Assembly (NCBI GenBank): GCA_002269645.1
Contig: NIVC01000865.1
Span: forward strand, 49,162 to 110,400
Reading direction: 5' to 3'
DNA length: 61,239 bases
Source of the DNA: Macrostomum lignano
Lineage: Eukaryota
How positions within the stretch are numbered: the first letter of the stretch is position 1; the number at the start of each line of letters is the position of its first letter. Positions 21,975-48,500 of the stretch are shown here, piece after piece. The translations under genes and the position numbers were made by a program. The notes below the pieces were generated by a model. It saw nothing but the letters and a program-made list of their open reading frames with translations. It ran no database searches and was not told the origin of the DNA.

Positions 21975-21975
21975 G

Positions 21976-22033
<58 letters not shown>

Positions 22034-22034
22034 T
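21710..22034. repeat. (GATA)n tract, third copy
   Basis: GATC then three AAGT interruptions, ending atatagttac. Confidence 0.95.
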
Positions 22035-23087
22035 AGTTACATTCATAAACGCAGGTGCACTATTAACCAGTTAATATTTATTATTGCGACAAAGTGGGGA
22101 ACAACACTGAGGAAAAAGAAACTCAAGGCATCTTGCCATAAAGCATGAATACTTGCTCGCATGGATGCATCTCATCTTCAGAGACATCGATTATCGACCG
22201 CCATTCTGCTGCAAGCCTGAGTGTGAGACACTTCTGCAGCACTCTTAAGTAAAAGCCGCAGGTGTGCGAGACTCAACTTGAGTCAGGAATTCTGCTCTGC
22301 TCTTTGCAGAAGAAATAAGGTGTGAGAAATTCCTTTTGTCGCAGTTGCTGTTGCTGCTGCTGGCTTCGGTCGATGTATCCAGTCTGTCTGTTTTGAGCAG
22401 CCCCTTAAGGATACTAAACCAACAGCTTGTGACTGTCTGAAGAAAACTCTAGTGTCTGAAAATCGTGCAGTTCACTTGGGTGCTTTCATTTGCACTTGTG
22501 ACTAACTTGCTGGGATGCTACCAGTAGGAGCAACCATCCACCCAATGATTTACAGCAGGGCCAACAGTCTACCAAGGCGTGTGATTTCCCGCTTACGGCC
22601 CCCGTTGCTTTGCCCCAGTTAAAGACTGCTTAAAACTGATTGAAAAAACTACGGCTCGTAAAAGCGAAATCTGCAGGATGTACGCTTACACGTGTATATT
22701 TTTTGTACTTTTTGCAGAAAATACATGCAAAATCAAATTAGTGACGCGATAGACTAAGCTAGTAGGCTACGCTCGTAGTTGACTGATCCGTGGCACTGGG
22801 TTTTCGTCCTTCAAATCTTTAAAATTTGATTCAAAATCAATAACATCAAGTGAGCCTTGCTTAATAATAATTGGTGCAACGAGGTGCGAGCAAGGGCTAC
22901 TAGCTATTGGTTCATCATAAGGTGCAGCTGCAACTGTTCAAGTTCAAGAAGTTCAAGAAAGTTTCTTGCAACAAAGCGAACAGAGCAACTACCGCAGTAC
23001 AGTAATCGGCAGTCGACGTATTCTTCCCCCGATGCCGTCATCAAGGACCACTTCTAGTTAACAGTAACTTCGTGTGGTCCTTGAACG

Positions 23088-25989
23088 TCATCTTCCCAAT
23101 CGACGGAAGATTTTGTAGGCCAGGATGAAAATTCCGGCAACAACTACGACAATAACAGCGATGGCGAGGAATGCCACGATGAATGGCGACAGTAGGGCCA
23201 CGGCTATTATTAGTAGCAGAACAATGCCGACTGAAAAGAGAGGGAGCAATAAATCCGGTTGACAATGAGTCATAAATCAGGTAATGATTGTACCAGATAA
23301 TTTACGATTGATCTTCGACTAAAAAATCCACCTAGACTCAGTGAAAACTCTCACGCAGTCGAAGGCCTCGCATTGTGCGCCTGAGCGCGGGTCGGTCCCT
23401 CTGGTAGATGTAGCGGCATCCGAACACGCTTAGCGCGTCAGTGTGACCGCCAAAGATTGACTCGACGTGCTGTTGAGACATCAGCAAGTAGCAGCTCAAC
23501 TCCGGCGACCAGCTCTCGCCGCAGCGATAGCAGAAGACGTGCGAGCACTCGAGACAGCGGCTGCAGAACTCTTCTTGCTGGTGCTGCGCCGGTTGTAGCT
23601 GCTGTTGCTGCTGCTGTTGCTGCTGCTGGTGATGCAGATCGAGGCCCAGCGGCAGTGGAACCAGGGCGGAACATCGGGGACACTGTCGGGATCGGGACAG
23701 CTGCAGTCCACTGACCGGATCGGTGACCATCTCGGTGGTCATTTCCTCTAACCGGCGTTTCACAATCGGGCAGTGCAGGCCCACGTGTGACCGGGTGCCG
23801 CACAGGTAGCAGAAAACAACCTGGCACAGATCGCAGCGAGTTTCCCAATCGTAGGGAGTTCGGCGCACTGACGTCTCAGGCAGGGCAACGAAGTAGCGAC
23901 AAGACGGGCCGGGGCAGGGCCGAGCTAGCGGCACTGAACGATTGAACTCTTCCCAGAAGCGAAACTGTCGACAGAGTCGAGCGTTCCGGGAACGCTGGGC
24001 AGCTGCCTCGGCGAGGTCCAGGGGAACGCAGTCACCAGCGTGGTGTGGTGCTCTGCAGGCGTAACAGAATTCGTAACCGCAGCGCGAGCAGATGACGTGG
24101 TTGCAGCCGGAGTCCTTCTCAATCAGGACGCAGCATCGGGGGCAGCGTTGAGCTCGTCGTAGAATCTGCCCGTTCTCCGAATAGGTTACATTGCACCACT
24201 GCGCCAGCAGCTGGTCCTGGCTGCGCCGGAAGTTGGCGCAGCTGCGGTCTGCGTGGAGCGGAGCGTGACAGTCGAAACACCAGGCCTGTGGATTTGGTAA
24301 TTGTGTGTTTGTAAATGAAGATGGTGAGCATATGTTGTTGCACATGCAGGAAAGTATTCTAACCAAATTGGTTTTATTGTTGGTCGTGCAACGGCTTGGT
24401 GAGTCTAATGCACTCCAGAGCTGGTATACAAGGTCAATGCAGTTACCTGAAAGCAACGCTGGCAGGCAACTGTGCAGGCAACTGTGGAGACATCGTCAGT
24501 GTCTTCACCGCTAGGATTTGGTACCGACTCGGCACCAGTAGTTGGCTGCTGTTGAAGGGCCCCCATCGGGGGCTGCGTCTGCTGCGAAGGCGTTGGTGGT
24601 GGTCGAGGCGTCAGGAGGCCGCAGTGTGGGCAGGTCCGGCTGTCCGAGCCCACCGCCTGGTCTGCCAGCCGACGATCAAGCAGCGTCAGCAGCTGCCGGT
24701 TAAAAATCGGACCATTGTCGCCATAGTAACCACTGCAGCAGTTGGCCAACAGAAAGCGCAGCTGAGCAACGCTGAAAACGGCCTCGGCAGGGCAGAGCGG
24801 ACACGGCGGCGGCTGCGGCCGGCCCTCCAGCAGGCGCGAGCGAGCATGGTCAGCGAGGCATGCAAGGCAGACCCGCTGGCGGCAGCAAGGAGTCAAAGCC
24901 AGTGGTCGTCCGGGCTCCAGACAGACTCGATCGCAGGTACCGATGGCCAGGACTCCCAGTCCCTCTGGCAGAGACAGTCGGGCTGTCAACTCATCAGCGA
25001 GAGCTGTTGTCCACAACGACAGCCAGCAGTCGACATCGTTCAGTGCAGCGCGCAGGCACAGATGAAAGATTCGGCCGCTGCCAGCACGGTCACTGCCGTC
25101 GGTTTCAGCGTCGTTTCCAATGTCATCGGAATTGACATCCGCTTGAATGGCTGCCTTGAGGACAGCCAGACGGTCTCGCTGGCCAGCCGTGTCGGCCACA
25201 GCGGAGACACACAGCAGATCTATGAGCAATCCGGACTCGAAACCGGCGAACCGACGATTTTGGCGGTGCCGCAGGCGATGAAACTGTCGCCAGCAGAGGC
25301 GACGGGACCAGGCGGTGAACCTCTGAGCCGCTTCTGCGGCTGCCGCTGCTGTTACTGCAGCTTCTGTGTCGTCGTTATCCGCAGCAGTGTCAGCATAGAA
25401 CCGACTGCCTAAAGATAAAATGTTGGACTGCATTCGTTTGGTTGGAAAAATATTTTTATGATAGCTTGAGAAGCGTCTGAAAAATGCACTATTAAACTTT
25501 GTGACGGTTGGTAAGGTAACCAAGCACAGAACTCGTTGTGAGTCTATTGACGACCCGGCATCATGCTGTACAGGACACGCTTCATAGACCAACCCCAAGA
25601 AGTTTAAACTTAAATAATTCACTGAGCATACCTAGCAGAGCCCGAACGATCCGCCACGGGCCCATCGATCCGGAGATTGACAGGCTGCTATTGTCAGCGT
25701 CACTTAACTCTTCCGCGTCGTCCTGCACGTCTGCCAAATCACCTGGCATGTGTTTCTGGTAGTCGCCCAGCTGCCCATCATCAGCTTGGCTGTCTTTGGC
25801 GGGGCGATCGCGCTTCTCCCCGTCGTCATCGTCATCGTTGCCAGTACTTTCCGCGTCGGAAGCGGCCGACGATGCATCGCTGGCCTCCATGGCGATGTTG
25901 ACGTGACCGCAGCCTCCGGAAGGCCCGACCGACTTCGGGCCGCTCAGCTGCTGCAGCCGGCCCTTCAAAGCTGTCTGAAGTTGCTCCAT
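23088..25989 (-). CDS. RNF217: RNF217-like RBR E3 ubiquitin ligase with an extra IBR/RING2-like pair and C-terminal TM (797 aa)
   Basis: Exons 25989-25632, 25408-24447, 24285-23355 and 23230-23088 have GT-AG boundaries and compatible phases (2394 nt). RING1-like CDRVC..CC..C..C, IBR, RING2 CPRC..IEKDSGCNHVIC. The C-terminal FGGHTDALSVFGCRY..RPALRR..RG plus hydrophobic tail matches the RNF217 signature FGDHxSxLSIFGCKY..RPxLRR..RG as I recall it. Confidence 0.82.
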
Positions 25990-27181: not shown

Positions 27182-28099
27182 TTGTTACACTTTTGCGACG
27201 CTGTCGACCTTGCGGTGTCTGTTGCTGCTTGGCGTACTGTTGACGATGCTGCCCGTGAAGGTCCGCGGAGCACAAGCTGGATGAGTGCGCGCCATCGGGA
27301 AGAGCTGAGCTGGAGGAGCACCTGCGGGGAAAAATGGGAAGTAGATGTAAAATTAAAAGTCCCTAGTTCTGTTTCATTGAGAAGTTCGTCAGCTCATCCT
27401 CTACTACGATTGCTACGCTCGTATCATTTATATTCAGAAACGGATCTTGTGGATCTTTTAGCTTTGGTTTTTTGCTTACCTCGCTGATAAATTTTGCGGT
27501 TTAACAGAAGGTCGCTGGCTGCGAGCTCGTTTGTCATATCCACACTTCACTGAAGCCTCCTTGTGGATCGTCCGATCGTCACCATTGTGACTGGTAGAAG
27601 TTTCAATGGAAAGTCCACGACGTCGAAAATACTGGGCCACCCGACAAGGCAACTCGGCTTCGGCGTTTGTCGCTCCGGCCGCTGCTGCAGTCTCGGCTGA
27701 AGCAAGTCGTCGCCTTTGCTTTGCGACCCGACGGCGGAACCTGGCGTTGCTCGGGTGCTCCCAAGTGGACTGTCCGCTGCTGCTGTTGAAGTAATAGAGC
27801 ACCCAGCCTGGCTCCGGGTCCGCCGTTTTACCAACCTCGTCAACTGGTAAAAGCAGTTGAACAGCCTGCCAGCCTGGAGGCAGAGGGGATGTCAGTCCAG
27901 CAAGGGCCAGGCTTCTCAACTCGGGCTCCTGGTCAAGATCGATGCCCAACTCGTGTAGAGCATAAAGCCTCAGCTCGGATTCGGTTGGCGGCGTGCAGTT
28001 TTCCGATGGAATTTCTTCCAGAAGTATCTGACGAATTCCATGTCTTCGGCAGCTGATCTCGCCGATCGAAGACTTTTGCTGACTGACATTCTTGTCCAT
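27182..28099 (-). CDS. Short protein consisting of a CEP164-type N-terminal/WW domain
   Basis: ORF 28099-27476: ILLEE..PTESELRLYALHELGIDLDQEPELRSLALAGLTSPLPPGW...YYFNSSSGQSTWEHP resembles the CEP164 N-terminus (VLEE..PSEQEI..IGIDP..EPEL..LA..G..APLP..W..YYFN...GQS.W.HP). A possible short second exon follows ttccccgcAG near 27321 and stops near 27182. The 3' structure is uncertain. Confidence 0.65.
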
Positions 28100-29345: not shown

Positions 29346-30809
29346 GGTGAGAGTAGTGAAGGATACAACCGCTAAAGCAAAACATCAAGTCTAAGCCACT
29401 TAGACTTTTTTTTTAATCTAAATTTTGAAAAATCTAAATTTTTCAGATTTCTAGCCAGATTTGTACCGATATGGATCTCATTGAAATTACCGTGTCTGGG
29501 GGGGGGGGTTGAACTTACGCTCGTAAAGAGTGCCCGACTGGACTTCACCTGCACCAGAGAGTTCGCGGGTTGGAGTCCGTTTTCGATGTAAGTTCTTGTT
29601 GAAGTGCGCCAGCTGCGGCAAGAGTCCTGATGTGCAATTCCAGCGGGATGTCACGTCTCCGAAGGAGGAGTTTCGGAGAGCATCTGCGACTGCTCGCACG
29701 CAATGAAGGCTCCGGTGTTACTGCGGCCTCAGGAACTCGCATCGACGGATGACGCGGAGTTGAGCGAGTAGGGAGAAACTTTGAGCAATTCCCGCATTAT
29801 TAAAAATCGAATTTTAAGAGAATTTGGACCCATATAAGCCTTACAACAGTAGTTCATGGATTGTTTTTCATTCAATACTTTTCAACACTTGGGCTCTTTT
29901 GCTTTAAAATTGTCATTGAACCGTTTTTAAACTCCAGTTATTGATTTAACTTCGATTTCCATTGTAAAGATTATGAAATTACTGAAATACAAATATGCTG
30001 AGAAATGGTCTCTGCAAATGCAAGTCCATATTGAGTTATTTTTCCCAGTTGATATACTATGGGGGATCCTGGATGAACTCAACTTTGGAACTTGACCGGG
30101 TGAAACCAGTGCATCTTGCAAAGTCCCGTACAGTAAGGACTCAAGCAGAGGCCCTGAAAGATAAGAAAAGCGTTGACAAATTGCTCTAAAATAGGGAATG
30201 TAGCGCGAGGACAAGGGTTTTCAACTTCTATTGACGACGAGTCTCTTGATCACCTGCTCGCTACCGTCTTTATATAGGATTTTATTTAAGCTTTTGATTA
30301 TTTTAGGGTCCAAACTTATGCATTTAACTTGCTCCGTATGGTGGTACACTAAGTATAGGACGCTTTTATTACGAGCGTAGAAATTTACTGTATTTGATTA
30401 CCGTATATTGTTGTTTATGACACAGGGTTGCTTCTAACCATAAAAATATATAGAATATATTTATGAAATAGTTATAATGACATACACCTCATCTCATTCA
30501 GTGAATAGCAGTAAATGAAGGGATATTTTCACGCGATGCCCACAGCATCCGATGAAGCAGATCGACAGCTTCAGTTGCTTTCATAAAAATCCCGTTTCGG
30601 ATTGAACTCGAAACAGCTACGATGCCAACAGCCTCCAGACTATCGCCTGATGCAGTTACAAGTATGTGTACAGCTGTCCTGATCATTCCACAGCTTCATA
30701 CGGCAGAATTCTCAGCTATCAGGTTCCACAGACGATGTCGGCTAGTGAACATTGTCTTTAGACTCTAAAAGCGAATAATTAAGAATGCTGAATTTCCCGA
30801 ACTTCATGT

Positions 30810-31312
30810 GCGAGATATGAGCAGATATTGTAGTTTAATGTGTGAGATATGAGCAGATATTGTAACTCCACGTGCAAGATATGAGCAAATATTGTAATTT
30901 TAATCTGCGAAATATTAGCAGATATTGTATTTTAATCTATGAGATAAGAGCAGATATTGTAGTTTAATCTGCAGGATATGAGCAGATATTGTAGTTTAAT
31001 CTGCAGGATATGAGCAGATATTGTAGTTTAATCCGCGAGATATGAGCAGATATTGTAGTTTAATTTGCGAGATATGAGCAGATATTTTAGTTTAATCTGC
31101 GAGATATGAGCAGATATTGTAGTTTAATCTGCGAGATATGAGCAGATATTGCAGTTTAATCTGCGAGATATGAGCAGATATTGCAGTTTAATCTGCGAGA
31201 TATGAGCAGATATTGTAGTTTAATCTGCAAGATATGAGCAGATATTGTAGTTTAATCTGCGAGATATGAGCAGATATTTTAGTTTAATCTGCGAGATATG
31301 AGCAGATATTGT
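30810..31312. repeat. ~32-bp minisatellite (GAGATATGAGCAGATATTGTAGTTTAATCTGC), ~16 units
   Basis: Direct reading. Confidence 0.92.
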
Positions 31313-32320
31313 ACGCGGTCGGTACAAATTAATTTCACCGACTTCCGTCAGGTCACGGCCCCCCCCCCCCAACTACTCAGCAAAGTTGCTGTCGACAGCG
31401 ACCTTCCAGTCTCGCAGTTGGAGATGCTGCTGCCACAGCTTGCTGAGCGCTTGCTGAGCAAATATAGGACCCCGTCAAGTGCATCGAATCAAAGAAACGA
31501 ACACAAAAACAAGAATTAAATTTGATTTTTTCGAGCTTTTAACGCACAACAGTAAAAACTTTGAAACACAATGAGAAAGTTTATATCGAATGTATTTTAC
31601 GTCTCGCGAAAGTAGGTAAAAATTAGGGGGAACAAAGAAGGTCAGAGCTCGCATTGACACAGCTGGAAACAGGTCTTGTAAGACAGGCGACTAACAGGCT
31701 AAAAGTTATGTAACAACAAGTATAGCGCACAAGGAACATTGCTATATAGCATTTTGCAGCCTATTTGGGCTTAAGACAGAAGCATTTAACTTGGTCCATA
31801 GCGGCTGTGAAAGCCAACTCGTGAGTGATAGCTGTGTGATGCAATATATTTGAGCAGATTTCACTGTACTGATAAGGTGACGTCAATAAAATGCCATCTA
31901 CTCAACTGTAACAAAAATTCAAAAAGAGAATTTTAGTGACCAAATCAAATACCAGCCAATTGCTACCATAGACAAAAGCTCCTTGACTTTAACAAACATA
32001 CGGGCACTATCATACCTGCCGAAATTTTGTCTGTGGTCGAAAGTCCACACGTGTCTGCATCAGCTTTGACTCCGCTTGTCACTGGCCTTCACCCAGGCGG
32101 AGCTTCTGGACCTTCAACAGGTAGCAACAGATTGCCTCAAGTTCTACTGTTAATTTCAATGCGTTTAAAGCCCAAATAGGCTGCAAAAAGCTATTATTAT
32201 GAAAACTAATCAAAAAGTCAAAACAAGAGAAAAAGAGAAAAGCAACAAAGAAGAAATCAGATTTGCACATAGACAGTTGGTTAAGCATCGAGAAGAGCCG
32301 CCTTAACTTACTCAGCCAGG

Positions 32321-35300
32321 TTAAATCTTATTTATCTTTGGCCGGCTCCTCACTCTCGGTCGAAGTCTCCTCAGCAGCAGCAGCGGCGGCTGCGGGGCGG
32401 CCGGACGCGGCCAGGCGCGGGCGAACAGCTGGCACCAGGCCAGCAGCCAGCAGGGCAGCAGCATCAGACAGTTCAGCCGGTAGGTGAAGCTGCCCAACAG
32501 CTGGCCTTCAACGTAGCCCTGCAGAGCGCCGTACTCGGCGCAGGTCCACGCCGACACTAAGCTTCTGGCTCCGCCGGCGGCATAGCAACCGCCTAGCAAC
32601 AGGCCGATTGGCGAAGCAGCCGCCAAGGCGACGGCGCCGATGCCGAACCGAAGGACTGCCGGCAGTCTGTCGGGCCCGGCAGCCAGCAGGCAGACGGGTG
32701 CCAGGGGCAGGGCGGAGAGGAAGGCCAGGCCGAAGTTCACCAGCGACACCGCGCCAAGGCTGAGGCCCAGCGACAGGCAGGCAGCGAGGCGGAGCGCGCC
32801 AGGGTGGCAGGCGACGATCATGTTGGGGAACATCAGCGGAAAGGCGGCGGCCATCGCCTGCGGGAGGGCAGAGGTCAGCGGACTGAACTGCCTAATTGAT
32901 CTACCGAACTGCCTAATTGAAGATGGCTTGACGGATTAACTAGATGGCTTGACGGATTAACTACTGGATGCGATTATACATGGCTTGACGGATTAATTAC
33001 ATGGCTTGACGGATTAACTACATGGCTTGCCGGATTACTAATGGCTTGACGGATTAACTACATGGCTTGACGGATTAACATGTGGTTTGCTGATTAACTA
33101 ATGGCTTGACGGATTAATTACATGGCTTGACGGATTAACTACATGGCTTGACGGATTAACTACATGGCTTGACGGATTAACTACATGGCTTGACGGATTA
33201 ACTAGATAACTTGACGGATTAACTAAATGGCTTGACGGATTAATTACATGGCTAACGGATTAAACTAGATACACTTGACGGATTAACTAATGGCTTGGAC
33301 GGATTAACCATGTGGTTTGCCTGATTAACTACATGGCTTGACGGATTAACTAGTGGCTTGACGGATTAACCATGTGGTTTGCCTGATTAACTACATGGCT
33401 TGACGGATTAACTAGATGGCTTGACGGATTAACCATGTGGTTTGCTGATTAACTACATGGCTTGACGGATTAACTAGATGGCTTGACGGATTAACTAGAT
33501 GGCTTGACGGATTAACTAGATGGCTTGACGGATTAACCATGTGGTTTGCCTGATTAACTACATGGCTTGACGGATTAACTAGATGGATTGATGGTCTTTA
33601 TAATGTCACGTCAATAAATGGGAGTTATTCATGGGGTGTGGAATATTTAAGGGACGTTAAATCTTTGAGGAATCTAATATATTTAAGGGGTGTGGGGTAT
33701 TTAACGGGTGCGGGATATCTAAGGGCTGTAGGATATTTAAGGGGTGTAGGTATTTAAGGGGTGTAGGGTTTTTAAGGGGTGTATGGTATTTAAGGGGTGT
33801 AGGGTTTTAAGGGGTGTAGGGTAATTAAGGGGTGTAGGGTATTTAAGGGGTGTAGGGTATTTAAGGGGTGTAGGGTATTTAAGGAGTGTAGGGTATTTAT
33901 TTAAGGGGTGTCGGTATTTAAGGGTGTGGGGTGGACGTGTCGGTCGTCCGGCTAGTCGTACGGCCGCGGGCCCAGCTACGCCTTCCGCGCCGCCAGGACT
34001 ACTTCATCCGGCCACGGTGGTTGCGGTCGTCCGGCTTCGTCGGCCGGTACTGCGTGTCGGCCCGGTGGCCCGGCTGGTGGCGGCGGCGGCCGCGAAAAGC
34101 CGAAACAGCTGCGCAGCGGTAGCGGCTTTGGCTGTTGGTTTCTCAGCTATCGCCGCTCCCGCTCCCGCTCGTCATGCTGTGGCTCACCGCCCCACATCAG
34201 CGGCTACGAGTGCATGGCTAGCTAGCGGCCGTCCCGCATCTTCTTTTTCCTGACCACCTTGGCGAGGACGTCGCAACAAGTTGCTCGCGGTCTAGCGGAG
34301 GTGCTGCCGCGGCCGGCAGGCCACCGGCTCCTCCTCCTCCTCCGCCGCGCTGGAAGCGGCGAGTCGGGCTGCCGCCCTTACAGCTTGCCGTCCTTGTCCG
34401 GCACCTCCCTCCGCCCCGACGGCGACCGGACACCCCACCGCCAAGTTTCTCATCGCTTGTACTGAGTGACTTAGATGAGTACTGAGTGACTTAGATGAGT
34501 ACTGAGTGACTTAGATGAGTACTGAGTGACTTAGATGATTACTGAGTGACTTAGATGAATACTGAGTGAATTAGATGAGTACTGAGTGACTTAGATGAGT
34601 ACTGAGTGACTTAGATAGATACTGAGTGATTTAGATCGATACTGAGTGACTTAGATGGGTACAGAGTGACTTAGATGGGTACTGAGTGACTTAGATGGGT
34701 ACTGAGTGACTTACAGAGTGACTTAAATGGGTACTGAGTGACTTAGATAGGTACTGCGTGACTTACAGAGTGACTTAAATGGGTACTGAGTGACTTAGAT
34801 AGGTACTGCGTGACTTAGATAGATACTGAGTGATTTAGATCGATACTGAGTGACTTAGATGGGTACAGAGTGACTTAGATGAGCACTGAGTGACTTAAAT
34901 GAGTACTGAGTGACTTAGATGAGTACTGAGTGACTTAGATGAATACTGAGTGAATTAGATGAGTACTGAGTGAATTAGATGAGTACTGAGTGACTTAGAT
35001 AGATACTGAGTGATTTAGATCGATACTGAGTGACTTAGATGGGTACAGAGTGACTTAGATGGGTACTGAGTGACTTACAGAGTGACTTAAATGGGTACCG
35101 AGTGACTTAGATAGGTACTGCGTGACTTAGATAGATACTGAGTGATTTAGATCGATACTGAGTGACTTAGATGGGTACAGAGTGACTTAGATGGGTACTG
35201 AGTGACTTAGATGAGTACTGAGTGACTTAGATGAGTACTGAGTGACTTAGATGAGTACTGAGTGACTTAGATGAGTACTGAGTGACTTAGATGATTACTG

Positions 35301-38300
35301 AGTGACTTAGATGAATACTGAGTGAATTAGATGAGTACTGAGTGACTTAGATGAGTACTGAGTGACTTAGATAGATACTGAGTGATTTAGATCGATACTG
35401 AGTGACTTAGATGGGTACAGAATGACTTAGATGGGTACTGAGTGACTTAGATGGGTACTGAGTGACTTACAGAGTGACTTAAATGGGTACTGAGTGACTT
35501 AGATAGGTACTGCGTGACTTAGATAGATACTGAGTGATTTAGATCGATACTGAGTGACTTAGATGGGTACAGAGTGACTTAGATGAGTACTGAGTGACTT
35601 AGATGAGTACTGAGTGACTTAGATGAGTACTGAGTGACTTAGATGAATACTGAGTGAATTAGATGAGTACTGAGTGACTTAGATGAGTACTGACTGACTT
35701 AGATACTGAGTGATTTAGATCGATACTGAGTGACTTAGATGGATACAGAGTGACTTAGATGGGTACTGAGTGACTTAGATGGGTACCGAGTGACTTACAG
35801 AGTGACTTAAATGGGTACCGAGTGACTTAGATAGGTACTGCGTGACTTAGATAGATACTGAGTGATTTAGATCGATACTGAGTGACTTAGATGGGTACAG
35901 AGTGACTTAGATGGGTACTGAGTGACTTAGATGAGTACTGAGTGACTTAGATGAGTACTGAGTGACTTAGATGAATACTGAGTGACTTAGATGAGTACTG
36001 AGTGACTTAGATGAGTACTGAGTGACTTAGATGAGTACTGAGTGACTTAGATGAATACTGAGTGAATTAGATGAGTACTGAGTGACTTAGATGAGTACTA
36101 AGTGACTTAGATAGATACTGAGTGATTTAGATCGATACTGAGTGACTTAGATGGGTACAGAGTGACTTAGATGGGTACTGAGTGACTTAGATGGGTACTG
36201 AGTGACTTAGATGGGTACTGAGTGACTTACAGAGTGACTTAAATGGGTACTGAGTGACTTAGATAGGTACAGAGTGACTTAGATGGGTACTGAGTGACTT
36301 AGATGGGTACTGAGTGACTTAGATGGATACTGCGTGACTTAGATAGATACTGAGCGACTTAGATGAGTACTGAGTGACTTAGATGAGTACTGAGTGACTT
36401 AGATCGGTACTGAGTGATTTAGATCGGTACTGAGTGACTAAGATCGGTACTGAGTAATTTGGTTCGGTACTGAGTGATTTTATGCTTATGACTTGGGGTA
36501 ACTTGGTTTTCTTGTTCTTATACAGTTAACGTTTTTTTGATGGACTGGTTTATGGAACTGGGTGTTGACTGGGTTTTGCTTGTGGGAACTGAGTTTACTG
36601 AATTTTCTGAGTTATTTTACTGGCTTAGTTAGGGTCTCGCCGTACCGCTCAGTCGACTAGAGTGGACCATGTCGTCTCTCGCGTCGTCGTCGCGCCGACG
36701 GACAGCCTCGGCACTTCAAGGTCCGCGTGGGTACGAACGGTCGCTACGCGTGGTGTCACAACTGGTCCAGGTCCAAGCCGTCGTGGCAAGTGCGGAAGGT
36801 GTACGTCGGACCGGGCGACGGTCGGCCTGTGCGGTCGTTTAAGGTCTCGGTGAGCGGCCTGGATGCTGCCTGAGCGATGGGGCGGATCGGACACCGAGAT
36901 GCTGGGCTTCAGCAGGCTGGATTCGCCATGGTGGGCGTACAGCCAGGCCTGCAGGCCGACCGTCTCCATCTCGGTGAACAGGAAGATGGTGTCCTTGGCC
37001 CAGTGCGTCTGGCCTGCCGGGTGCAGGGGCGGGTAAGTGTAGAGCTGAGCAGTTGCTATTCCATAATAGTATCACCTAGATACCGGTCATGCTTGGGCGC
37101 AACCCCGGGACTCTCCCGGCCGTTTCTATTGGCAACACACACATGTAAGTCGCTATTGGACGGAATAGTAGTCACGTGACCGCTCTCAGCCAATAGCGAC
37201 TTACATGTGTGTGTTGCCAATAGAAACGGCCGGGTGATTCCCAAAGTTGCGCATGTATGATACCGGTGATGACTATAAGATACCGGTGATGGACTATAAG
37301 ATACCGGTGATGGACTATAAGATACCGGTGATGGACTATAAGATACCGGTGATGGAGTAAAGATACCGGTGATGGACTAAATATACCGGTGATGACTATA
37401 AATACCGGTGATGGACTATAGGATAACGGTGATGGACTATAAGATACGGTGATGACTATAAGATACCGGTGATGACTATAAGATACCGGTGATGGACTAT
37501 AAGATAACGGTGATGGACTATAAGATACCGGTGATGACTATAAGATACCGGTGATGACTATAAGATACCGGTGATGGACTAGATACGGTGATGGACTATA
37601 AGATACCGGTGATGACTATAAGATACCGGTGATGGACTATAAGATAACGGTGATGGACTATAAGATACCGGTGATGGACTATAAGATACCGGTGATGGAC
37701 TGTAAAATACCGGTGATGGACTAGAGATACCGGTGATGACTATAAGATACCGGTGATGGACTAAATATACCGGTGATGAATATAAGATACCGGTGATGGA
37801 CTATAAGATACCGGTGATGGACTGTAAAATACCGGTGATGGACTAGAGATACCGGTGATGACTATAAGATACCGTTACTGGACGATCAGATACCGGTACT
37901 GGGCAGTAAGATACCGGTTCCAGAACAATACAATACCCTTACTGGGGCTATCAGACCCCCCCCCAAGGGTCAGAGTGTACATGACTGACGATGTGAAAAG
38001 TCAGGACCGCTGTACACCCTGTGTGAGCGGGTGCATCAGTGCGTGCCTGCGTACAGCATTGGCGCGCTTGTATGCAGCTCAGCCGCAGCTATTGCGCGGC
38101 GCATCTGAAGGCTGCGTACGGCTGCTCAGTCCATGGACTAAGGGGGGGGGGTCGCCGCACACACCCTCAATTATCCCAGCTAATGCTGGCACCCAATTTA
38201 CAGCTGTGTGATCTGAAGCAATACTCACACAAATTGTTCCAAGTGGTCGAGAATCGAACCCGCGACCTTTCAGTCGTGAGTCCGATGCTCTGACCACTAG

Positions 38301-41300
38301 ACTGCAACCTTCACAACACAAATTTAAATAAAGTAAACTGTCGGCTTTCGGCCCCTACAACAGACTCACGCCTGAAGAACTTCGCCAGCGCCAGCATCAG
38401 CGCCACGCTGCCGTCCGTCCGACGCTCGTGGGAGGCGGCGCCAGAATCGGCGGCGCGCAGAGGAGTCATGAGAACCAGCGCCTCGGTGCGCGCCGCGCGA
38501 TAGGCTCGAGAAATGCCAACAGCATTGATGCCCTGCAGCTTCTGCGGATGTGTGAAGCGAAGAGGAAATGAAGATGTACCATAAATTTCAAATCAAGCTA
38601 CAGACTGCTCATATCTGATAATATAGAAATTCACCTTTTCTCCCAGAATGAGCGGATAGCTGAAGGTGAAGTTCTGAGTGTAGGCGTCCAGGCCAATTTT
38701 TTGCATTTCCTCTTCAAGCCACTTTTGAATTTTCCACTAAAAATAAATATAAGGAAAATGTTAAAACAATAAATAAACATAATTAAATAAAAAATCCAGA
38801 TGGCATACCTCTCAAGGTTCTTCACAGTGTACATCTTTTGCACATCAGCATAATAGTCATTGATGAAGTTGACCTGATTAAATTGCTCCTCAACAACTCC
38901 TAAAAATTGAATAGCAATGAGACAATATCATGGATAATATTAATTTGAAATACCATAAAATAAAATTTTCTTGTATAGAAACTAGTCTTCATTGGCAAGC
39001 AAAGGGTCCCAAGCATATGCAATAAAGGCCAAAGCACAATACAAAATAACATGGTTTCTATAATAATATTCAATAGGAAAAATCATAAATGTTACAATAT
39101 ACTATGAGTTTTTCAGTTCTATTACAACTAGAAGTTGGCTGAAAGTCCAAAATAAAAATTTTATTTAGAATGTTATAGACACCATGCTAGTTATCATAGT
39201 AGCATATAACACAAAACTTTATATTTTGCATCTTTTAGAATTGCAGCAATATTTCTTATATAAAATGTATAAAATAGCAATTAAATTTAAATGACAATTT
39301 AGTTCATAGTTTTACTATTACCTTAATATATTTTGGCCCTATACTCTAGCCCCAGCCTATAATATAGCAGATGTTCTTAAACCCTCTATGCTATTCACAT
39401 CTTTTACAGAATGCTTGATACTATTTATGAAATTTAAACATTAAAAGAGGGCTAAATGCTACCAATTAGATTGTGAAACAGTATTAAAATTGCATTCCTT
39501 ACTGTATGATTATTTAATTTTTGGTTAAAATTTTGGTTTAAGAATATGTTATTTGATATAAAAAAGAAAGATTTAACCAATGCTCTACTTAAACCAAAAT
39601 TTTACCATATCCATATCAATGACTAATCAAGAATTATTTTAGTTAGTATAAGAAAGTCTTATCTGTCTCAATTGGTGAAATTGGCATTAGTAAAATGGTA
39701 CAAAAATTAGTAAATTTACAAAAGCTACAAATATTAACTTCACAACTGTTATAAACTTACAATTTTTTTTCATTATAACAAAGTTTCTTATATATTTTAG
39801 CTAATAATAGTGTTTTAACTTTTTTTATTATACTGTTTTGCTTTTTTCAGTCTAAAAACTTTTTAATGCTAATATTTTTTCATTTTGTGCACACTTATAA
39901 GGTATAGAAAGTTGTCTTAGGATGGCCTAGTAGGTCTTTAAATCCCACTGCTGCAACCAATAAGGTGTTTGCTGTTTTCTTCTTGATTTAGGCCTTAGTA
40001 GCATAGGTAGTGCTACCACTAGTTTCTTTAGGCCTTGGCCTTCAATGAGATGACTGCCATTCAAACAAAATAAACTTTAAAATACAACAAAATAAAATTT
40101 CAAAAAATCACATTAAAATATTTGTTAAATTAATTAAACTAAATGAATTATAAATAAAAACATTCCTTTTATAATATTCTTATTTTCTTAACAAGTAATT
40201 AATGACTAATATTATATATAAAATACAAATATACAAATTAAAATGAAAAAAAAAATTATATACTTAATGTTAAGGTCATGCCTGTATTAAAATGACATGG
40301 TAGGCCTAGGCCTCATAGTGTTAGGCATAGAATAGAATAATAGGCCTAATCAATATGGGTGTATAATGATATACCATAATCAGGAAGGTGGCAGATATGC
40401 CAGAATTTTCTGGTATGCCAGATTTTTTGGCATGCTTAAAGCAATTATAAAAATATGGCATAATTGGTGTGCTCAAGGCAAAGCTAAAAATATGGCATGA
40501 ATGATTGGCATGCATCAAAACTTTGAATTTTGAAGTTTAATATTGTAGTTATGGTTGTCATTGTGGTCATGTGGACATGGTTGTATTTATAGTCTAGTAA
40601 AAAGCTTAGTTAAAAATATTATTTTTTGTAAAATGTACTGAATGATTTTTGAAACTTTCTTTTCTTAGAATACATTAACATTAGCACAATTCACAAAGAT
40701 GAAAAGTGGCGATCAAGCTGATCATCTTGCAGTTGCAGTTGCAGCTTTACAATGTTGCATGGCATTCATTTGGCATGCTAAATGCTCCCTAGTATCACAA
40801 AGGTTCATTTAGTCTATTTGAGCACTTTATAATTATAGGCCTAATATGCTAATAAAATGCTCAAGCTAAAGATAGCAGTATGGAGGTAGTCAGCAAAGTA
40901 GGGCTGAAAATGTAAGGCCTAGTATATTTGACATATATAGTAAAAAGGGTCATTAAAATTTTGGCGTGCTTGGCGTGAATTGGTAGCTTTGCTCATCTTC
41001 GATTCCGGCGTGCCTCTGCCACCTTCCTGAGCATGGATGATATGCCATCATGCCATAAGTTTTTGATATTGCAATTGTGCCAGAAGTTATAATGATCTAT
41101 ACAAGAGCAAGAGATTAAGAAATAAGCTTGATAGTAGTAGTCATTTATAAACATAAGTTGCCAAAAATCAAGTTAATAAAATACCTGGTGAAAGCGCCTT
41201 CTCTGAGATATAGCATCGATTATTAAACTGCGGATCGCTTAGCATCACCATATAGCCGATTGCACCAACAATCAGCAATATTCCTACGAACCGATGGTAG

Positions 41301-41341
41301 GACAGGAATACCTTGATTGTGGTTTCTATTTTACCTGTCAT
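32321..41341 (-). CDS. GPAA1: GPI-anchor transamidase subunit GPAA1/Gaa1, multi-exon; part of it lies in the complemented block
   Basis: Exons 41341-41185 (..CYISEKALSPG), 38899-38809 (GVVEEQF), 38736-38635 (GLDAYTQNF), 38541-38370 (TEALVLMTP..LALAKFFR), 37013-36665 (HWAKDTIFL..AWL..GSIQAA|VALEF..EGVNG/LPNLDL), 34428-33934 (HGLF..LNN/LQERFHQSFFFY..YVSIGDY) and 32857-~32321 (SLVNFGLAFL..LPCWLLAW). The segments within 32921-36852 read only as reverse-without-complement. Several indels. Confidence 0.9.
32885..33590. repeat. ~21-bp minisatellite (ACCGAACTGCCTAATTGATCT; appears as TGGCTTGACGGATTAACTAGA after 32921)
   Basis: Direct reading; spans the left complement junction. Confidence 0.92.
33660..33925. 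repeat. ~18-bp minisatellite (TTTAAGGGGTGTAGGGTA as given)
   Basis: Direct reading; inside the complemented block. Confidence 0.85.
34460..36480. repeat. 20-bp minisatellite (ACTGAGTGACTTAGATGAGT as given), ~2 kb, with recurring variant order
   Basis: Variants gagt/gaat/agat/cgat/gggt recur in a similar order; inside the complemented block. Confidence 0.95.
37115..37234. repeat. Perfect 45-bp inverted repeat with 30-bp spacer (foldback/MITE-like), intronic
   Basis: 37115-37159 is the exact reverse complement of 37190-37234. The spacer contains the palindrome GTCACGTGAC. Imperfect pairing extends outward. Confidence 0.9.
37258..37900. repeat. ~21-bp minisatellite (GATACCGGTGATGGACTATAA)
   Basis: Direct reading. 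Confidence 0.92.
38060..38310 (-). mobile_element. Diverged copy of the tRNA-derived SINE
   Basis: cacacaccctcaattatcccagctaatgctggcacc..gaatcgaacc..cagtcgtgagtccga..accactag matches the reverse complement of 5593-5870, with an internal deletion. Confidence 0.8.
40380..41030. mobile_element. Putative non-autonomous DNA element (MITE) with 16-bp terminal inverted repeats
   Basis: TCAGGAAGGTGGCAGA (40380-40395) and TCTGCCACCTTCCTGA (41015-41030) are perfect inverted repeats. Subterminal TGGCA/TGGCG-rich motifs. No TSD seen. Confidence 0.55.
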
Positions 41342-42581: not shown

Positions 42582-45500
42582 TTGAGCTCTTCGAAAAATA
42601 AAACGCCGCAGATTTCCGAGATCGCAGTGAGCGACGCGGACCTTCTGCGCGAGATCTGCTCGTCGAATGGCCTGCCGGAGGACCGGGAAAAACTGCAGGC
42701 GGAGGCCGCCGAGACCGCCACCTTGGAGATTTTCTTCGGCGGCTATCCCCGTTTTGCTCACCTCAGCCTGTTCCCCAATCTCCGCGAGCTCATCATTGTG
42801 GAGCAGAGCCTGACCGAGATCAGCACCCTGGACAGCTGCCCCCTGCTGGAGGTGCTCTGGGTCTCAGACTGCAGGCTGACTCAAATCTCTGGCCTGTCTG
42901 CAAATCACCGACTCAAGAAGCTGTACTTGCATAGCAACTCCATAGCGACGATAAACGGCGGCCTCGACCATCTCGGCGGCTCGCTGGAGGTTCTGTGGCT
43001 GGCCAACAATCAGCTGCGCGAACTCGCTGGCTTCGAGAAACTGTCCAACCTGAAGGAGCTCAATTTGGCGCAGAACTTCATCACGGAAGTGGCCGGCTGC
43101 CTCACGGAGAACGCCAGCCTGGAGAGCTTGAACCTGTCGGGCAACCCGCTGGCCTCCATTCGCGATGTTGTGTCGCTGGCGGCTCTGCCGTCTTTGCGCC
43201 GGTTCTGCCTTCGCGACCCGCAGTACCGACCCTGCCCAGTCACCCAGCTATCCAACTACTCCATCTTCATCCTGTACCACATGCCCCGGCTGCTCAACCT
43301 GGACACGTTCGACTGCTCAAGCCGGCTGCCGTTTGAGCTGGCGGACAGCACAGTATTGAAGAAACGAATGTACTACGCCATGCGAGCCGAGGTTCTTGAG
43401 CGGACCAGCGCTTGTCTCGGCCGGAGGGTGACAATTGGCCTGGCCGAGTACCACAAGGTGGGTTGAGGATGTGGTATCAAGGAAGTGGGATCAAGGATGT
43501 GGGATCAGAGATCTGGGATCAAGGATGTGGGATCAAGGATCTGGGACCAATGATCTGGGATCAAGGATGTGGGATCAAGGATGTGGGATCAGGGATCTGG
43601 AATCAAGGATCGGATCACAAACCTGGGATCAAGGATGTGGGATCAAGGATGTGGGATCAAGGATGTGGCATCAAGGATGTGTGATCAAGGATCTGTGATA
43701 AAAAATCTGGGATCAAGGATCTGGGATCACAAATCTAGGATCAAGGATCTGTGATAAAAAATCTGGGATCAAGGATCTGGGATCACAAATCTAGGATCAA
43801 GGATCTGGGATCACAAATCTGGGATCAAGAATCTGGGATCTGATCTGGGATCAAGGATCTGGGATCAAGGATCTGGGATCAAGGATCTGGGATCTAAGAT
43901 CTGGGATCTAGGATCTGGGATCTAGGATGTGGGATCAAGGATCTGTGATAAAAAATCAAGGATCTGGGATCACAAATATGGGATCAATGATCTGGGATCA
44001 CAAATCTGGGATCAAGGATCTGGGATCACAAATCTGGGATCAAGGATCTGGGATCTAGAATCTGGGACCAATGATCTGGGATCAAGGATCTGGGATCAAG
44101 GATCTGGGATCAAGGATCTGGGATCAAGGATCTGGGATCAAGGATCTGGGATCAAGGATCTGGGATCAAGGATCTGGGATCAAGGATCTGGGATCAAGGA
44201 TCTGGGATCAAGGATCTGGGATCAAGGATCTGGGATCAAGGATCTGGGATCAAGGATCTGGGATCAAGGATCTGGGATCAAGGATCTGGGATCAAGGATC
44301 TGGGATCAAGGATCTGGGATCAAAATCTGGGATCAAGGATCTGGGATCAAGGATCTGGGATCAAGGATCTGGGATCAAGGATCTGGGATCAAGGATCTGG
44401 GATCAAGGATCTGGGATCAAGGATCTGGGATCAAGGATCTGGGATCAAGGATCTGGGATCAAGGATCTGGGATCAAGGATCTGGGATCAAGGATCTGGGA
44501 TCAAGGATCTGGGATCAAGGATCTGGGATCAAGGATCTGGGATCAAGGATCTGGGATCAAGGATCTGGGATCAAGGATCTGGGATCAAGGATCTGGGATC
44601 TAGGATCTGGGATCAAGGATCTGGGATCAAGGATCTGGGATCAAGGATCTGGGATCAAGGATCTGGGATCAAGGATCTGGGATCAAGGATCTGGGATCAA
44701 GGATCTGGGATCAAGGATCTGGGAATCTGGGACAAGATCTGGGATCAAGGATCTGGGATCAAGGATCTGGGATCAAGGATCTGGGATCAAGGATCTGGGA
44801 TCAAGGATCTGGGATCCTCTGGGATCAATCTTCAAGGATCCAAGGATCTGGGATCAAGGATCTGGGATCAAGGATCTGGGATCAAGGATCTGGGATCAAG
44901 GATCTGGGGATCCAAGGATCTGGGATCGAAAGGATCTGGAGCAGGAATTTAGGATCTGGGATCAAGGATCTGGGACCAAGGATCTGGGACCAAGGATCTG
45001 GGACCAAGGATCTGGGACCAACAACTTCTGAGCCTTTTAACCGACCATTTCTTCAACAGGCTCGCCTCGTCGAAACTGGAGCAGGAAACTTCAGCCAGCT
45101 GGAGGCCGCCTGGCCAACAACGCGTGGCTTCTTCACCGAGGCATTGAAGAAGATCGAAATGGACAGAGAGCTGGCCTGGAACCTGCTCAACATGGAGTTG
45201 GAGAGCGGCGGCAGCGTTCGCTGCGAGCTGGGCACCGGGCAAGACTGGCACAAACTGGTGGCCGACATTGTCAGCTCGAGGTTCTGCTCGTCACAGCATC
45301 GGCAGAGCGGCGTCACCGCCTGCAAGGTGGACAAAGTGCACCGATTGCACCTGCCAGTGCTGGCGGCCAGGTGAGACAGTCAGTCAGTGAGTGAGACAGT
45401 CAGTCAGTCAGTCAGTCAGTCAGTGAGACAGTCAGTCAGTCAGTCAGTCAGTCAGTTAGTCAGTCAGTCAGTCCTTATCAACCACACCGCCATCCAGGTA

Positions 45501-48500
45501 CCAGGAGGCGTGTCTGCCGCGTCTGCAAACCCTTGCCCGGAGCACCTACTGCTCTCTGGACATGGTGGCAAAGAAGTACCAGGACTATCTGTTCTACCGT
45601 TGGCCCGAAGGCGACAACGACAGTCTGCTGGACTGCCTAGAGCGCGGCGTCACCAGCCGGCCGGCGGTGCTGTCCAACAGCGTCAACATCGCCGATGGGG
45701 CAACGCTTTGCGACTGCGCAAAGGAAACTGGCGTCGGCCGGTCGCGGCTGCTGCTGGTGAAGGCCTACATCGGCAAGTCGGTGCAGGCGGTCGCATCACT
45801 GGAGGAGGTCGAGACGATCATTGCGGCTGCAAACGGAGGCGAGCAACAGTCGCAGGAGTCAGGCGATGAAGAGCCGAAGCGAAACTGACCGCCGTGTTCC
45901 ACATGGCCGACTCCACCAGCGAAGGCTACTCGTGCGAATGCCTCGGCCGCCAGTGCACCTGGTACTTTCTAGACAACGCCTGCCTTGTTCCGGAGTTCCT
46001 GGTGGAGCTGGAGTACTCGGGCAGGCGGACCAGCAATCCGTTTCACCAGGTCGTGTGCGGCGGTGGCCCGGCTGCGCCCACGCCTGACCTCGAGCCCGCG
46101 CCGCCAGTGACGGCACCCTACGAGAACCTGGCCGAGCTGCAGATCGAGGCCCTCGGCCTCACCCGGCTCCGAGGCCTCGACTCGCTGCACTCTCTGCGGA
46201 CGCTGAACGCCCGTTCAAATCTGCTGACAGGCCTGGAGGACCTGGCCGGACTGCCAGTTGAAGAGATCGACGTGTCCTGGAACCGAATCGTCTCCATCGA
46301 CGGTCTCAAGCACGTCGGGAAGCTCAGAAGTCTCCGGCTGGCGTTTAATCGACTCACCTGCCTGAGAAACGAGCTCAGCCACATGCGGAAGCACACGGCA
46401 ATGCTGACTGGCCTCAGTCTGGAGGGAAATCCCTGGCATCGGTACAAGGTGGCTTACAGAGTCATCGTCATCAATAAGCTGAAGGAGCTGAAGGTTTGTT
46501 TACATGGAGTTCTATGCGTCATCAGACTTAAATTTCAGGCATAAAAACATTTATAAAAGGGGACTTGGGTCCACGCAAAAATCTCAGTCAACCCCGTGCC
46601 TTAGTGTTTGCTCGAATGCAATTTGAATATTTTATCTTAGTCATGGTCTCAGCACAGATAGTAAAGAAGACCAGATATGCCTATTATGCAAATTTGCGTT
46701 GCCTTGCTCATATCCTAACACAATATTCTCATTTCACAAATTGTGCAGGTACTGGATGGCCAGCCGGTCACAGAGGAGGAAGTCACAGCCTCAATGCCAG
46801 GCCGGTTCAACCTTCTCAGCTACGCTGCTCACGTGACCGGCACGCCCAAATACATCAGTTTGGAGTCGCCGACCCAATTCTTGCCAGTGCAGCCGCCTGA
46901 GCTGTTCGCCCAGGTGAGCATGCTCAACCTGGACGGACTCAACCTGACTCGAATAACCGGTCTGGAGCGCTGCTTCAACCTGCGCTGGCTGTCAATCAAC
47001 TACAATCACGTGTCCCGCATTGAAGGCCTTGACTCCTGCTCGCAGCTGGAGGAACTGCTGGCAACGCACAATCTGATTGGCACAATGCCTACAGGCACAT
47101 ATCCGGCCCTGCGCCACCTGAACTTGGCGCATAACTGCATCGAACAGATTGGCACGGGGCTGCTGGCGCCAAACCTGACCAGCCTCAACCTGTTGAACAA
47201 CCACGTGTCCAGCCTGGCCGGCATTGACAAGCACAGCAGCCTGGCCCAGCTCTTCATCGGCCTGAACCGCATCCAGGACACTCGCGAGCTCTTCTACCTC
47301 AAATCTTTGCAGTCGCTCCTGATTCTCGATCTCGGCGAGAACCCCATCGCGTCCAACTCGCACAACTATCGGACGACTGTCATCTACCACCTGCGATCGC
47401 TGTGCTCACTCGACGGCGTCCCAGTTGAGCAGGACGAGGTTCAGAGCGCCGTTCAACTGCTGGGCGGCAAGCTGACGACTGACCTGCTGATTGAAAAGTT
47501 CGGTCACGACCGATTCTACGATCTCAAAGAGCTGGACATGTCGCGCAGCAACCTGCGGACTATTGAGCTCAACCTCCACGATCGCTTCATCAACCTGCGC
47601 AGCGTCAATCTCGAGTCCAACTCGTTGACGTCGCTCAACGGAATCGCCAGCTTGCCGTCTCTTCGCGTTCTCTGCCTGAACCACAACCACATCGAGTCTC
47701 TGGCCTCGGGCACTGGCAGCCTTCTGCCCACGCTGGAGGTGCTGCACCTCGCCTACAATGGGATCAAGGACGCCGCGTCGTTGCAGCTGCACCGGCTGCC
47801 GTCGCTGCGCACTCTGTTTATGCAGGGCAACGAGCTGCAAACGACGGACGGATTGCAGTCAGGTCAACTGCGGGAGCTCGTGCTGGATCGGAACAAGCTG
47901 AGAACAATTAACCTGAGCGGGTGTCCCTACGTGCAGGTGAGAGCACACTGTGCGCACCGATCTTGACCGATTATTCTTGCCACTACTGCTGATATTCTTT
48001 GAAGTTACATGTGTAGAGTTAAAAACGTATTGAAGTTGTCAGTGACAGAGCAGCTCAGACGAAACTTATCCGTCTAAAGTACCTGGGTTCAATTCCGTGA
48101 GCAGTGAAATTACGGTTTATGTGCATTGCCTGACAATGAGAAATTAAGGACCGATGTACACCCTGGATTAGGCATAACCGCTTGTGTTCCTGCTGATTAC
48201 CGATGGAGAACTTTTATGGCTCTCCACACGTAACTCAATTTGGTCGCATTGTAATTTGGAGTGCAACCTTTCATGAAGCCTTAAAATCGGATTTCTTGCT
48301 CGTAAATTTGACCTGTCGTAGCGATGAGGTCAGGAACGTAGTCAACCCTGTGAGAGTTGGTTACAAAATTATTTGCCAAGGATAACTTCAATCAAAATAC
48401 TACCAAACAGTGCAACTTTACTTCTATCAGGAGTTGCACGTCGAGGAGAACCGACTGAAAGACCTTGGCGGCATACCGGACCACTGCCCCTACCTGCACA

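Follow-up and report, generated by a model that had tools for sequence, protein, structure and literature searches.

By antiparallel pairing, all known products of replication, repair, recombination and transposition are direct or reverse-complement copies. A chromosomal inversion gives the reverse complement of a segment and flips the order of its features. Mirror repeats of the H-DNA type and complement repeats, in which a reverse-only reading is equivalent to a complement-only one, occur in real DNA as short pairs of copies that are typically homopurine or homopyrimidine. As for sequence data, unpolished patches of long-read assemblies are ordinarily in the correct strand sense.

The window, a stretch of 61,239 nucleotides from Macrostomum lignano, contains a block of 3,932 bp (32921-36852) in which every position holds the complement of the true base, without reversal. 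The block is thus the base-wise complement, in place, of the sequence demanded by its flanks. The order of features along it is kept and both junctions are seamless once it is complemented, as the sequence-only reading had proposed when it described a complement in place and not an inversion. We rejected a DNA inversion, as reverse-complementing the expected sequence does not give the block. An inversion is also ruled out because the remainder of exon 5 of the GPAA1 gene abuts 36853 and a satellite abuts 32920, with the internal order unflipped. Searching the window as given with tblastn, in any frame, leaves the interval from 36853 to 32563 free of GPAA1 matches, so the block is indeed invisible to a six-frame search, as had been predicted. 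The flanks were also considered as the complemented part. This was rejected, since normal translations are obtained outside the block for the transposon, the LRRC9-like gene and the remaining GPAA1 exons.

The left boundary is exact (32920/32921) and lies inside a 21-bp satellite, around 36 bp into the array. This array spans 32885-33591, with a true plus-strand unit of TACCGAACTGCCTAATTGATC/G; positions 32885-32920 are normal and positions 32921-33591 are complemented. At the edge, the sequence reads ...taccgaactgcctaattga/a up to 32920, and the exact complement of the 21-bp unit follows from 32921. Complementing from this position yields three identical units TACCGAACTGCCTAATTGATC at approximately 32881-32943. 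TRF then reports a single array at 32885-33591, in contrast with the window as given, where the array begins at 32923. The mid-unit switch to the complement that had been noticed at 32920/32921 is therefore real, and the array is continuous and in phase after complementing. The right junction (36852/36853) falls within GPAA1 exon 5, between the codons ...IQAA / VALEF..., and can be placed only to within 1 nt, since the adjoining codons remain synonymous or conservative. It sits in unique exon sequence, with no obvious contig-end feature there.

Tandem satellite makes up 2,943 bp of the block (75%). Besides the 21-bp array, the block contains two satellites in GPAA1 introns, one with an 18-bp unit (33680-33932) that lies between exons 6 and 7, and one with a 20-bp unit and about 104 copies (34459-36477) that lies between exons 5 and 6.

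The minus strand of the locus carries an ordinary flatworm GPAA1 gene whose introns are rich in satellite. The first coding exon (41177-41341; MTGKIETT...LSDPQFNNRCYISEKALSPG) is normal, and so are exons 3 and 4 (38371-38724, limits approximate; KWLEEEMQKIGLDAYTQNF... / ...GINAVGISRAYRAARTEALVLMTP...LALAKFFR), with the exon 4 donor C/GTGAGT at 38370/38369. The 5' part of exon 5 (36853-37013; QTHWAKDTIFLFTEMETVGLQAWL...RSGSIQAA) is found by ordinary reverse-complement reading. Its 3' part (36665-36852; VALEFAGVSGWQRARLHVEGVNG / LPNLDLVNTVVRIAGKHG... / ...RLRQAAALLLRSLLYQ) and exon 6 (33934-34428; QASGSPASLHGLF...VVEAIWRSLNN...LQERFHQSFFFYALP...) lie in the block and are readable only when complemented. 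Finally, the terminal exon (32321-32857; AMAAAFPLMF...PCWLLAWCQLF...stop) is normal and without frameshift, has the acceptor cccgcag/ and covers Gaa1 372-497. Complementing restores the GT/AG sites of the block exons, namely the exon 5 donor CAG/GTGAGA (G at 36664), the exon 6 acceptor CACAG/ (exon start 34428) and the exon 6 donor CAG/GTGGGG at 33933. All of them agree in phase with the normal exon starting at 32857 and confirm the splice sites called earlier at 36664, 34429 and 33933.

In terms of homology, five GPAA1 homologues were aligned to the window by tblastn. Without any correction, every alignment breaks off at 36853. Once the block is complemented, the alignments extend to 36784 and continue at 36782-36729 and 34431-34003, which agrees with an exon said to read normally to about 36853 and to resume in reverse-only reading. 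Translated in the reverse-only sense, the block by itself matches Pfam Gaa1 (PF04114) with E=2.3e-32 and 113.2 bits over profile positions 101-272, in the gap that the outside exons leave; the gathering score is 28.6 bits. The core Gaa1 motifs recognized earlier in 34428-33934, read in this way, are borne out by this match. The GPAA1 exons outside the block reach 100 and 46.9 bits (profile 4-101 and 372-497), and a construct of exon 6 and the terminal exon reaches 164.7 bits (profile 176-497). Only after complementing is the domain coverage collinear on one strand, with 4-101, 101-272 and 176-497 following each other as coordinates descend. As a negative control, ten complement-only stop-free stretches from outside the block gave no Pfam hit; a chance match is excluded by the E-values and by this control. 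Counts of stop-free stretches in the complement-only reading were dropped as a test, being non-discriminating in this GC-rich sequence. The best identity in a protein search with the GPAA1 exons was 43%.

The change of strand sense is also seen without any annotation. We scored 400-bp chunks as they are against their complement with a Markov test. Outside the block, 116 non-satellite chunks have a mean of +14 bits (SD 8.4, minimum -4.1), against -12.8, -8.6 and -26.7 for the three unique segments inside it. The sign change of this profile falls together with the block. Dinucleotide odds outside the block are 0.88 for CG and 1.26 for GC, 0.75 for TA and 0.91 for AT, and 1.11 for CA and 0.84 for AC; all three orderings are flipped within it. 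Two other regions gave negative scores. A 21-bp satellite at 37259-37918 is strongly negative, and was rejected as a second complemented block: a satellite provides no more than one sample of its unit, the normal flank holds a partial unit in direct sense (37086-37100), the right end decays gradually and the flanking exons are normal. The coding 12-mer repeat at 55758-56477 is not complemented either, as it runs on into a normal ORF.

We found no other complement-only region in the window that behaves like the block. Complement-only 14-mer matches across the whole window are confined to 32884-32907 against 32921-33573, plus a trivial simple repeat at 45397-45460. The k-mer search of the window thus gave no complement repeat partner for the block, since the matches link only the two parts of a single satellite array on either side of the junction. 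A second copy related by reversal was not found either, with 0-1 reverse-only k-mer matches from the block at k>=14. The block is the sole copy of its unique exons.

As for the neighbours, the transposon ORF in the window shares 98% identity with UniProt entries of M. lignano. The best identity found for the LRRC9-like gene in a protein search was 42%. Exact look-ups of three window ORFs matched no record, and a metagenome scan with the junction peptides found no relative.

Complementing 32921-36852 in silico, as the sequence-only reading had suggested, makes the GPAA1 exons align and splice, but frameshifts remain. No uninterrupted GPAA1 ORF was obtained: across the 683 coding nt of the two in-block exons there are 4 firm frameshifts and 2 probable ones, none of them in homopolymers. 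Those of exon 5 are at around 36783 (2 nt missing) and 36715-36690. In exon 6 they are firm at around 34320-34305 and at 34273, and probable at around 34090-34071 and 33990-33967. On the contrary, the 7,221 nt (~7.2 kb) of homology-checked coding sequence outside the block contain none, an excess of 4/683 against 0/7,221 nt (Fisher p=5.5e-5). If three C-run differences of a broken transposon copy are counted, the comparison becomes 4/683 against 3/10,932 nt (p=3.6e-4). Homopolymer differences of the long-read type do occur in the window. We interpret the in-block frameshifts as probable sequence errors. They amount to a local indel excess relative to the flanks, as in an unpolished draft patch, and agree with the earlier view that extra indels fit a poorly polished insert. 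Satellite purity was dropped as an error gauge, because the indel content of satellites inside the block (5-6%) overlaps that of arrays outside (0-13%).

The block is a data error, an in-silico error of strand handling and not biology, because no polymerase or recombinase makes complement-only DNA. Complementing restores independent features, namely the satellite phase on the left, codon continuity on the right, the splice sites and the oligonucleotide signature. The restored junctions, gene, splice sites and signature support the earlier interpretation of a software artefact or an edit. We favour, with a probability of roughly 0.6, a strand-handling error made while the assembly was built, followed by an escape from polishing. 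A 3.9-kb, mostly satellite piece, of the type that ends contigs and needs patching, would have come from the opposite strand and been reversed without complementing (equivalently, complemented without reversing). It would then have been joined base-perfectly to the flanks, leaving every base as the Watson-Crick partner of the true one. Read-based polishing would have fixed the flanks, with the unmappable block staying at draft quality, and indels would cluster in the block exons because unalignable reads leave it unpolished. The underlying locus would be an intact minus-strand gene for GPAA1 (GPI transamidase subunit Gaa1) with satellite-filled introns. Since reads cannot map to the block and the indels cluster in its exons, the indel excess suggests an origin within the assembly pipeline, at a stage that preceded read-based polishing. 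A published assembly of M. lignano is a PacBio/Canu draft polished by Pilon with Illumina and RNA-seq reads (PMC5730564), and polishing of this type would pass over a block that cannot be mapped. The same paper refers to PacBio run SRX1063031. A left edge around 36 bp into an array and a satellite share of 75% are typical of a contig end or gap.

The strongest competitor, which we consider a serious though less probable account, is that a correct finished sequence was later complemented at 32921-36852, either deliberately (e.g. as a planted control) or by an accident in a script or file conversion. The base-perfect junctions, with nothing lost or duplicated, are what a character map on a slice of a correct string would leave, and a right boundary within a unique exon looks arbitrary. 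That same boundary and the indistinguishable satellite indel levels count against an origin in the pipeline. Furthermore, no known assembler behaviour gives such a block: we are not aware of a particular bug in an assembler or gap-filler that causes one, and a literature search for reverse-not-complement assembly artefacts found none described. However, a slice of finished sequence should match its flanks in quality, and instead the non-homopolymer frameshift indels concentrate in the block exons; poor polishing beside satellites could partly explain these indels independently. The left edge also falls where a satellite array starts, and by a post-hoc estimate ~2% of window positions are as near to an array end.

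Two further accounts would have the complement arise in decoding or in the animal. The window and its repaired version differ at exactly two 2-bit XOR symbols, at 32920 and 36852, and both differences are XOR 3, the complement operation. Two symbol errors in a differential encoding (two-base colour-space or XOR) would therefore complement everything between them, as an isolated colour error changes all later decoded bases (PMC2709925). We regard this as very improbable, since short colour-space reads cannot assemble a block that is 75% long tandem satellite and includes a 2-kb array. Moreover, the homopolymer differences are of the long-read type, the published M. lignano data types found are PacBio, Illumina and 454, and the indel excess is not predicted. 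As for real DNA, the chromosome would have to carry a parallel complement of 3.9 kb of GPAA1 in the same 5'-3' direction, with the exon, splice and satellite structure mirrored. The presence of the sequence in the window is the sole support for this, although a broken GPAA1 copy could be tolerated in M. lignano, a neopolyploid (PMC10733133). Such a segment could arise only through 5'-5' and 3'-3' joins or through resynthesis base by base. The complement keeps the exons, the splice sites, the phase of the satellite and the oligonucleotide signature, which fits a character map and no mutational process, and we give this account almost no weight. If true, it would overturn basic nucleic-acid chemistry, and nothing in the evidence points that way.

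The locus itself is ordinary and the block has no biological significance. Its interest lies in what it can hide, as a complemented block escapes six-frame searches, gene predictors and read-based polishers, and leaves a conserved gene model truncated without any warning. If a step of the assembly pipeline is responsible, the same assembly may hold further blocks of this kind, which the as-is-versus-complement oligonucleotide test and reverse-only protein searches would detect.

When compared to known systems, the complemented locus shares its domain with metazoan GPAA1/Gaa1 (PF04114; e.g. Patella, Helobdella, Nematostella and mammalian orthologues). It has the same motif order (YWAKD, SGSIQAA, EGxNGxLPNLDL, QASG, HGLF, RSLNNLxERFHQSFFFY, PCWLL), is 38-44% identical to five homologues in the aligned parts, and is multi-exon with GT/AG introns. 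Unlike these orthologues, the locus as given has around 230 codons that are unreadable in six frames, and 4-6 frameshifts in the block exons. It resembles a chromosomal inversion in that two sharp breakpoints enclose an unreadable block and interrupt a gene, but here the order is unchanged and six-frame searches come back empty. The block falls in the same symmetry class as mirror and complement repeats, but has no partner copy. Two isolated colour-space decoding errors would reproduce the in-place complement exactly (PMC2709925), but the sequence content of the block and the data types argue against such an origin. With unpolished long-read patches, the block shares a local excess of frame-breaking small indels; it differs from them in strand sense, and its unmappability itself explains the lack of polishing.

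The gene for the GPI transamidase subunit Gaa1 (GPAA1, minus strand) is readable as given to ...RSGSIQAA at 36853 and is nonsense beyond. When the 3,932 bp at 32921-36852 (the block) are complemented without being reversed and the minus strand is translated, the frame runs on as ...SIQAAVALEFAGVSGWQRARLHVEGVNG, then LPNLDLVNTVVRIAGKHG, with QASGSPASLHGLFLPFDIPAV..., VVEAIWRSLNN and LQERFHQSFFFYALPAIDRYVSIGDY farther along. The peptide from this reverse-only reading of the block alone matches the Pfam Gaa1 profile (PF04114) at 113 bits (E=2.3e-32), filling the profile gap between the normally readable exons (4-101 and 372-497). In tblastn searches with five GPAA1 homologues (limpet, leech, sea anemone, sea slug, mole), all five alignments to the window as given end exactly at 36853, with no match between 36853 and 32563. 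In the complemented version they extend to 36784, 36782-36729 and 34431-34003. The repaired GPAA1 is collinear with its homologues in a multiple alignment, and its block-encoded part carries the invariant residues EG.NG.LPNLDL, QASG, HG.F and R.LN.L.ER.HQSFF.Y.LP. As a negative control, 10 long stop-free complement-only stretches from other parts of the window had no Pfam matches. The sequence-only reading had proposed that GPAA1 continues in frame when read without complementing; Pfam, tblastn and the alignment bear this out, and with the block complemented in silico the gene runs collinearly through it.

The splice sites predicted by that reading are also recovered. After complementing, the minus strand has an exon 5 donor CAG/GTGAGA (G at 36664), an exon 6 acceptor CCCCACAG/GCC (exon start 34428) and an exon 6 donor CAG/GTGGGG at 33933. 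All are phase 0, compatible with the normal minus-strand acceptor cccgcag/GCG at 32857, which lies outside the block and is read as given.

At the left edge, the plus strand reads ...ctgaactgcctaattgatc taccgaactgcctaattga/a near 32900 and agatggcttgacggattaactag atggcttgacggattaactac... from 32921, the latter being the base-wise complement of the preceding string with direction and phase unchanged. Complementing gives three identical units TACCGAACTGCCTAATTGATC across 32920/32921, and TRF then reports a single array at 32885-33591, whose start as given is 32923; the suggested mid-unit switch of the satellite is thus real in the string. A whole-window search found complement-only matches of 14-mers only between 32884-32907 and 32921-33573, plus a trivial simple repeat; the numerous trivial k-mer matches of reverse-only type outside the block come from (TAGA)n arrays. 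The right edge reads ...taaggtctcggtg/agcggcctggatgctgcc... on the plus strand. The block limits are 32921-36852, the left exact and the right within 1 nt. Just outside, a GPAA1 intron holds a near-perfect inverted repeat at 37105-37235 (ccggccgtttctattggcaacacacacatgtaagtcgctattgg ... ccaatagcgacttacatgtgtgtgttgccaatagaaacggccgg), hairpin or MITE-like. At 38240-38300 (minus strand), also in a GPAA1 intron, is a string resembling a tRNA T-arm, ggtcgagaatcgaacccgcgacc..., which may be a fragment of a tRNA-derived SINE; ARAGORN called no tRNA there.

Dinucleotide frequencies are unchanged by reverse complementing and changed by complementing alone, which provides an annotation-free test. In non-satellite sequence outside the block, odds ratios are 0.88 for CG vs 1.26 for GC, 0.75 for TA vs 0.91 for AT, and 1.11 for CA vs 0.84 for AC. 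All three orderings are reversed in non-satellite sequence of the block (1.19 vs 1.04, 0.99 vs 0.66 and 0.88 vs 1.11, respectively). A third-order Markov log-likelihood ratio, as-is vs complemented (leave-one-out, 400-bp chunks), averages +14 bits per 400 bp outside the block (SD 8.4, minimum -4.1, n=116 chunks), against -12.8, -8.6 and -26.7 for the three unique segments inside it. Its 100-bp profile flips sign at ~32900 and back at ~36900. Negative scores also occur at a 21-bp satellite at 37259-37918 (GATACCGGTGATGGACTATAA, in the GPAA1 intron adjoining the block) and at a coding 12-bp repeat at 55758-56477, a tandem array being roughly one sample of one short unit. For the satellite the score strongly favours the complement, but a direct partial unit lies in the normal flank at 37086-37100 and the array end decays gradually; its score probably arose by chance from a single short unit. 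The 12-bp repeat belongs to a continuous normal ORF, and we saw no evidence that either array is complemented. The complement-in-place relation is confirmed, because homology, satellite, splice sites and oligonucleotide signature are all restored by one operation.

Such a relation is symmetric, and either block or flanks could be the aberrant side. It is the block, because genes outside it translate normally: a non-LTR retrotransposon (endonuclease, reverse transcriptase, RNase H), an LRRC9-like gene, an IBR-domain gene and the other GPAA1 exons. The retrotransposon lies in a tandem duplication at 10055-22945 (6,445-bp unit, 99.74% identical). In copy 2 the 1,236-aa ORF (17893-21603) is intact; in copy 1 it is broken into three ORFs by C runs of differing length (C4/C5, C5/C6). 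UniProt entries from Macrostomum lignano match the ORF at 98% identity; for the single-copy genes, the protein database offers no close relative, the best matches being 42-43% identical. A Macrostomum genome assembly is thus the very probable source of the window. The LRRC9-like leucine-rich-repeat gene (42582-49012, plus strand) is 42% identical to coral LRRC9. The IBR/RBR-type zinc-finger gene (23338-25622, minus strand) appears as two long, overlapping same-strand ORFs, perhaps because of a frameshift or short intron at ~24405-24456. Other ORFs are a weak Srsx-type 7TM ORF (3573-4361, plus strand), a WW-domain ORF (27476-28099, minus strand) and a long ORF at 55460-56524 whose body repeats a 12-bp unit in tandem (60 copies, 96% identity) and encodes (DDMP/NDMP)n. 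Tandem satellites (periods 4 to 32 bp, arrays up to 2 kb) are very dense in introns and between genes, as at 8065-9142, 15260-15588, 21709-22033, 30809-31313, 43466-45021, 49596-50190, 57129-59061 and 60674-61239.

The frameshift excess indicates that the block's quality is lower, like that of a draft. Its two exons (683 nt) hold four well-supported frameshifts: at ~36783 (2 nt missing between GGT and CTG), ~36715-36690, ~34320-34305 and 34273 (G inserted after AACAAC). A further two are probable: joining in a transmembrane-like stretch read in a different frame takes the Pfam score from 153.7 bits to 164.7; none of the six is in a homopolymer. No frameshift was found in ~7.2 kb of homology-checked coding sequence outside (other GPAA1 exons, LRRC9-like exons and the intact 1,236-codon transposon ORF; Fisher p=5.5e-5), in line with the extra indels already suspected in the block. 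Outside indel differences are limited to C-run lengths and microsatellite length changes between the two 99.7%-identical copies of the 6.4-kb unit, and counting the three C-run differences still gives p=3.6e-4. Exon GC content is equal inside and outside (65-70%).

DNA strands pair antiparallel. To our knowledge, products of replication, repair, recombination and transposition are always direct or reverse-complement copies, and a complement-only segment would need 5'-5' and 3'-3' links to become part of a normal strand. A string character map complements in place, with the same outcome as minus-strand sequence reversed but not complemented, and every positional feature of the block is preserved as either operation would leave it. 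Because antiparallel pairing excludes complement-only products and a character map yields exactly this pattern, an in-silico, non-biological origin, summed over its variants, is close to certain (probability about 0.99). The block is not a real biological feature; that it is real DNA, for which the string itself is the sole support, is vanishingly improbable. The artefact or edit first proposed is therefore supported by the restored gene, satellite, splice sites and signature, together with the indel excess.

Among the variants, we lean towards an error in the assembly pipeline, before read-based polishing. A strand-handling mistake at that stage would leave a complement-only block that attracts no reads, and polishers would skip it, leaving its indels. 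A contig end or patched gap is suggested as the site, because satellite makes up 75% of the block and the left edge falls ~36 bp into an array. Read-based polishing was part of one published M. lignano assembly, which may not be the source of this window: PacBio reads were assembled with Canu, and Pilon was then run with Illumina and RNA-seq data (PMC5730564). A later edit of the finished sequence, deliberate or accidental, is a less probable but serious alternative: it would account for the base-perfect junctions and for a right edge placed arbitrarily within a unique exon, but does not predict the indel cluster, to which weak polishing beside satellites could independently add. In two-base colour-space decoding, an isolated colour error alters all later decoded bases (PMC2709925). 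Between the window as given and the repaired version exactly two colours change, those at 32920 and 36852, each by the complement operation, but the 2-kb satellite arrays and long-read-type error profile make such a decoding error very unlikely.

The literature searched yielded no account of a complement-only block in a genome assembly, and the value of this one is for assembly quality control only. The gene under it is an ordinary Gaa1/GPAA1 family member. The block differs from an inversion in that six-frame searches of it fail and the order of features is kept, and from a mirror-repeat structure in having no partner copy.
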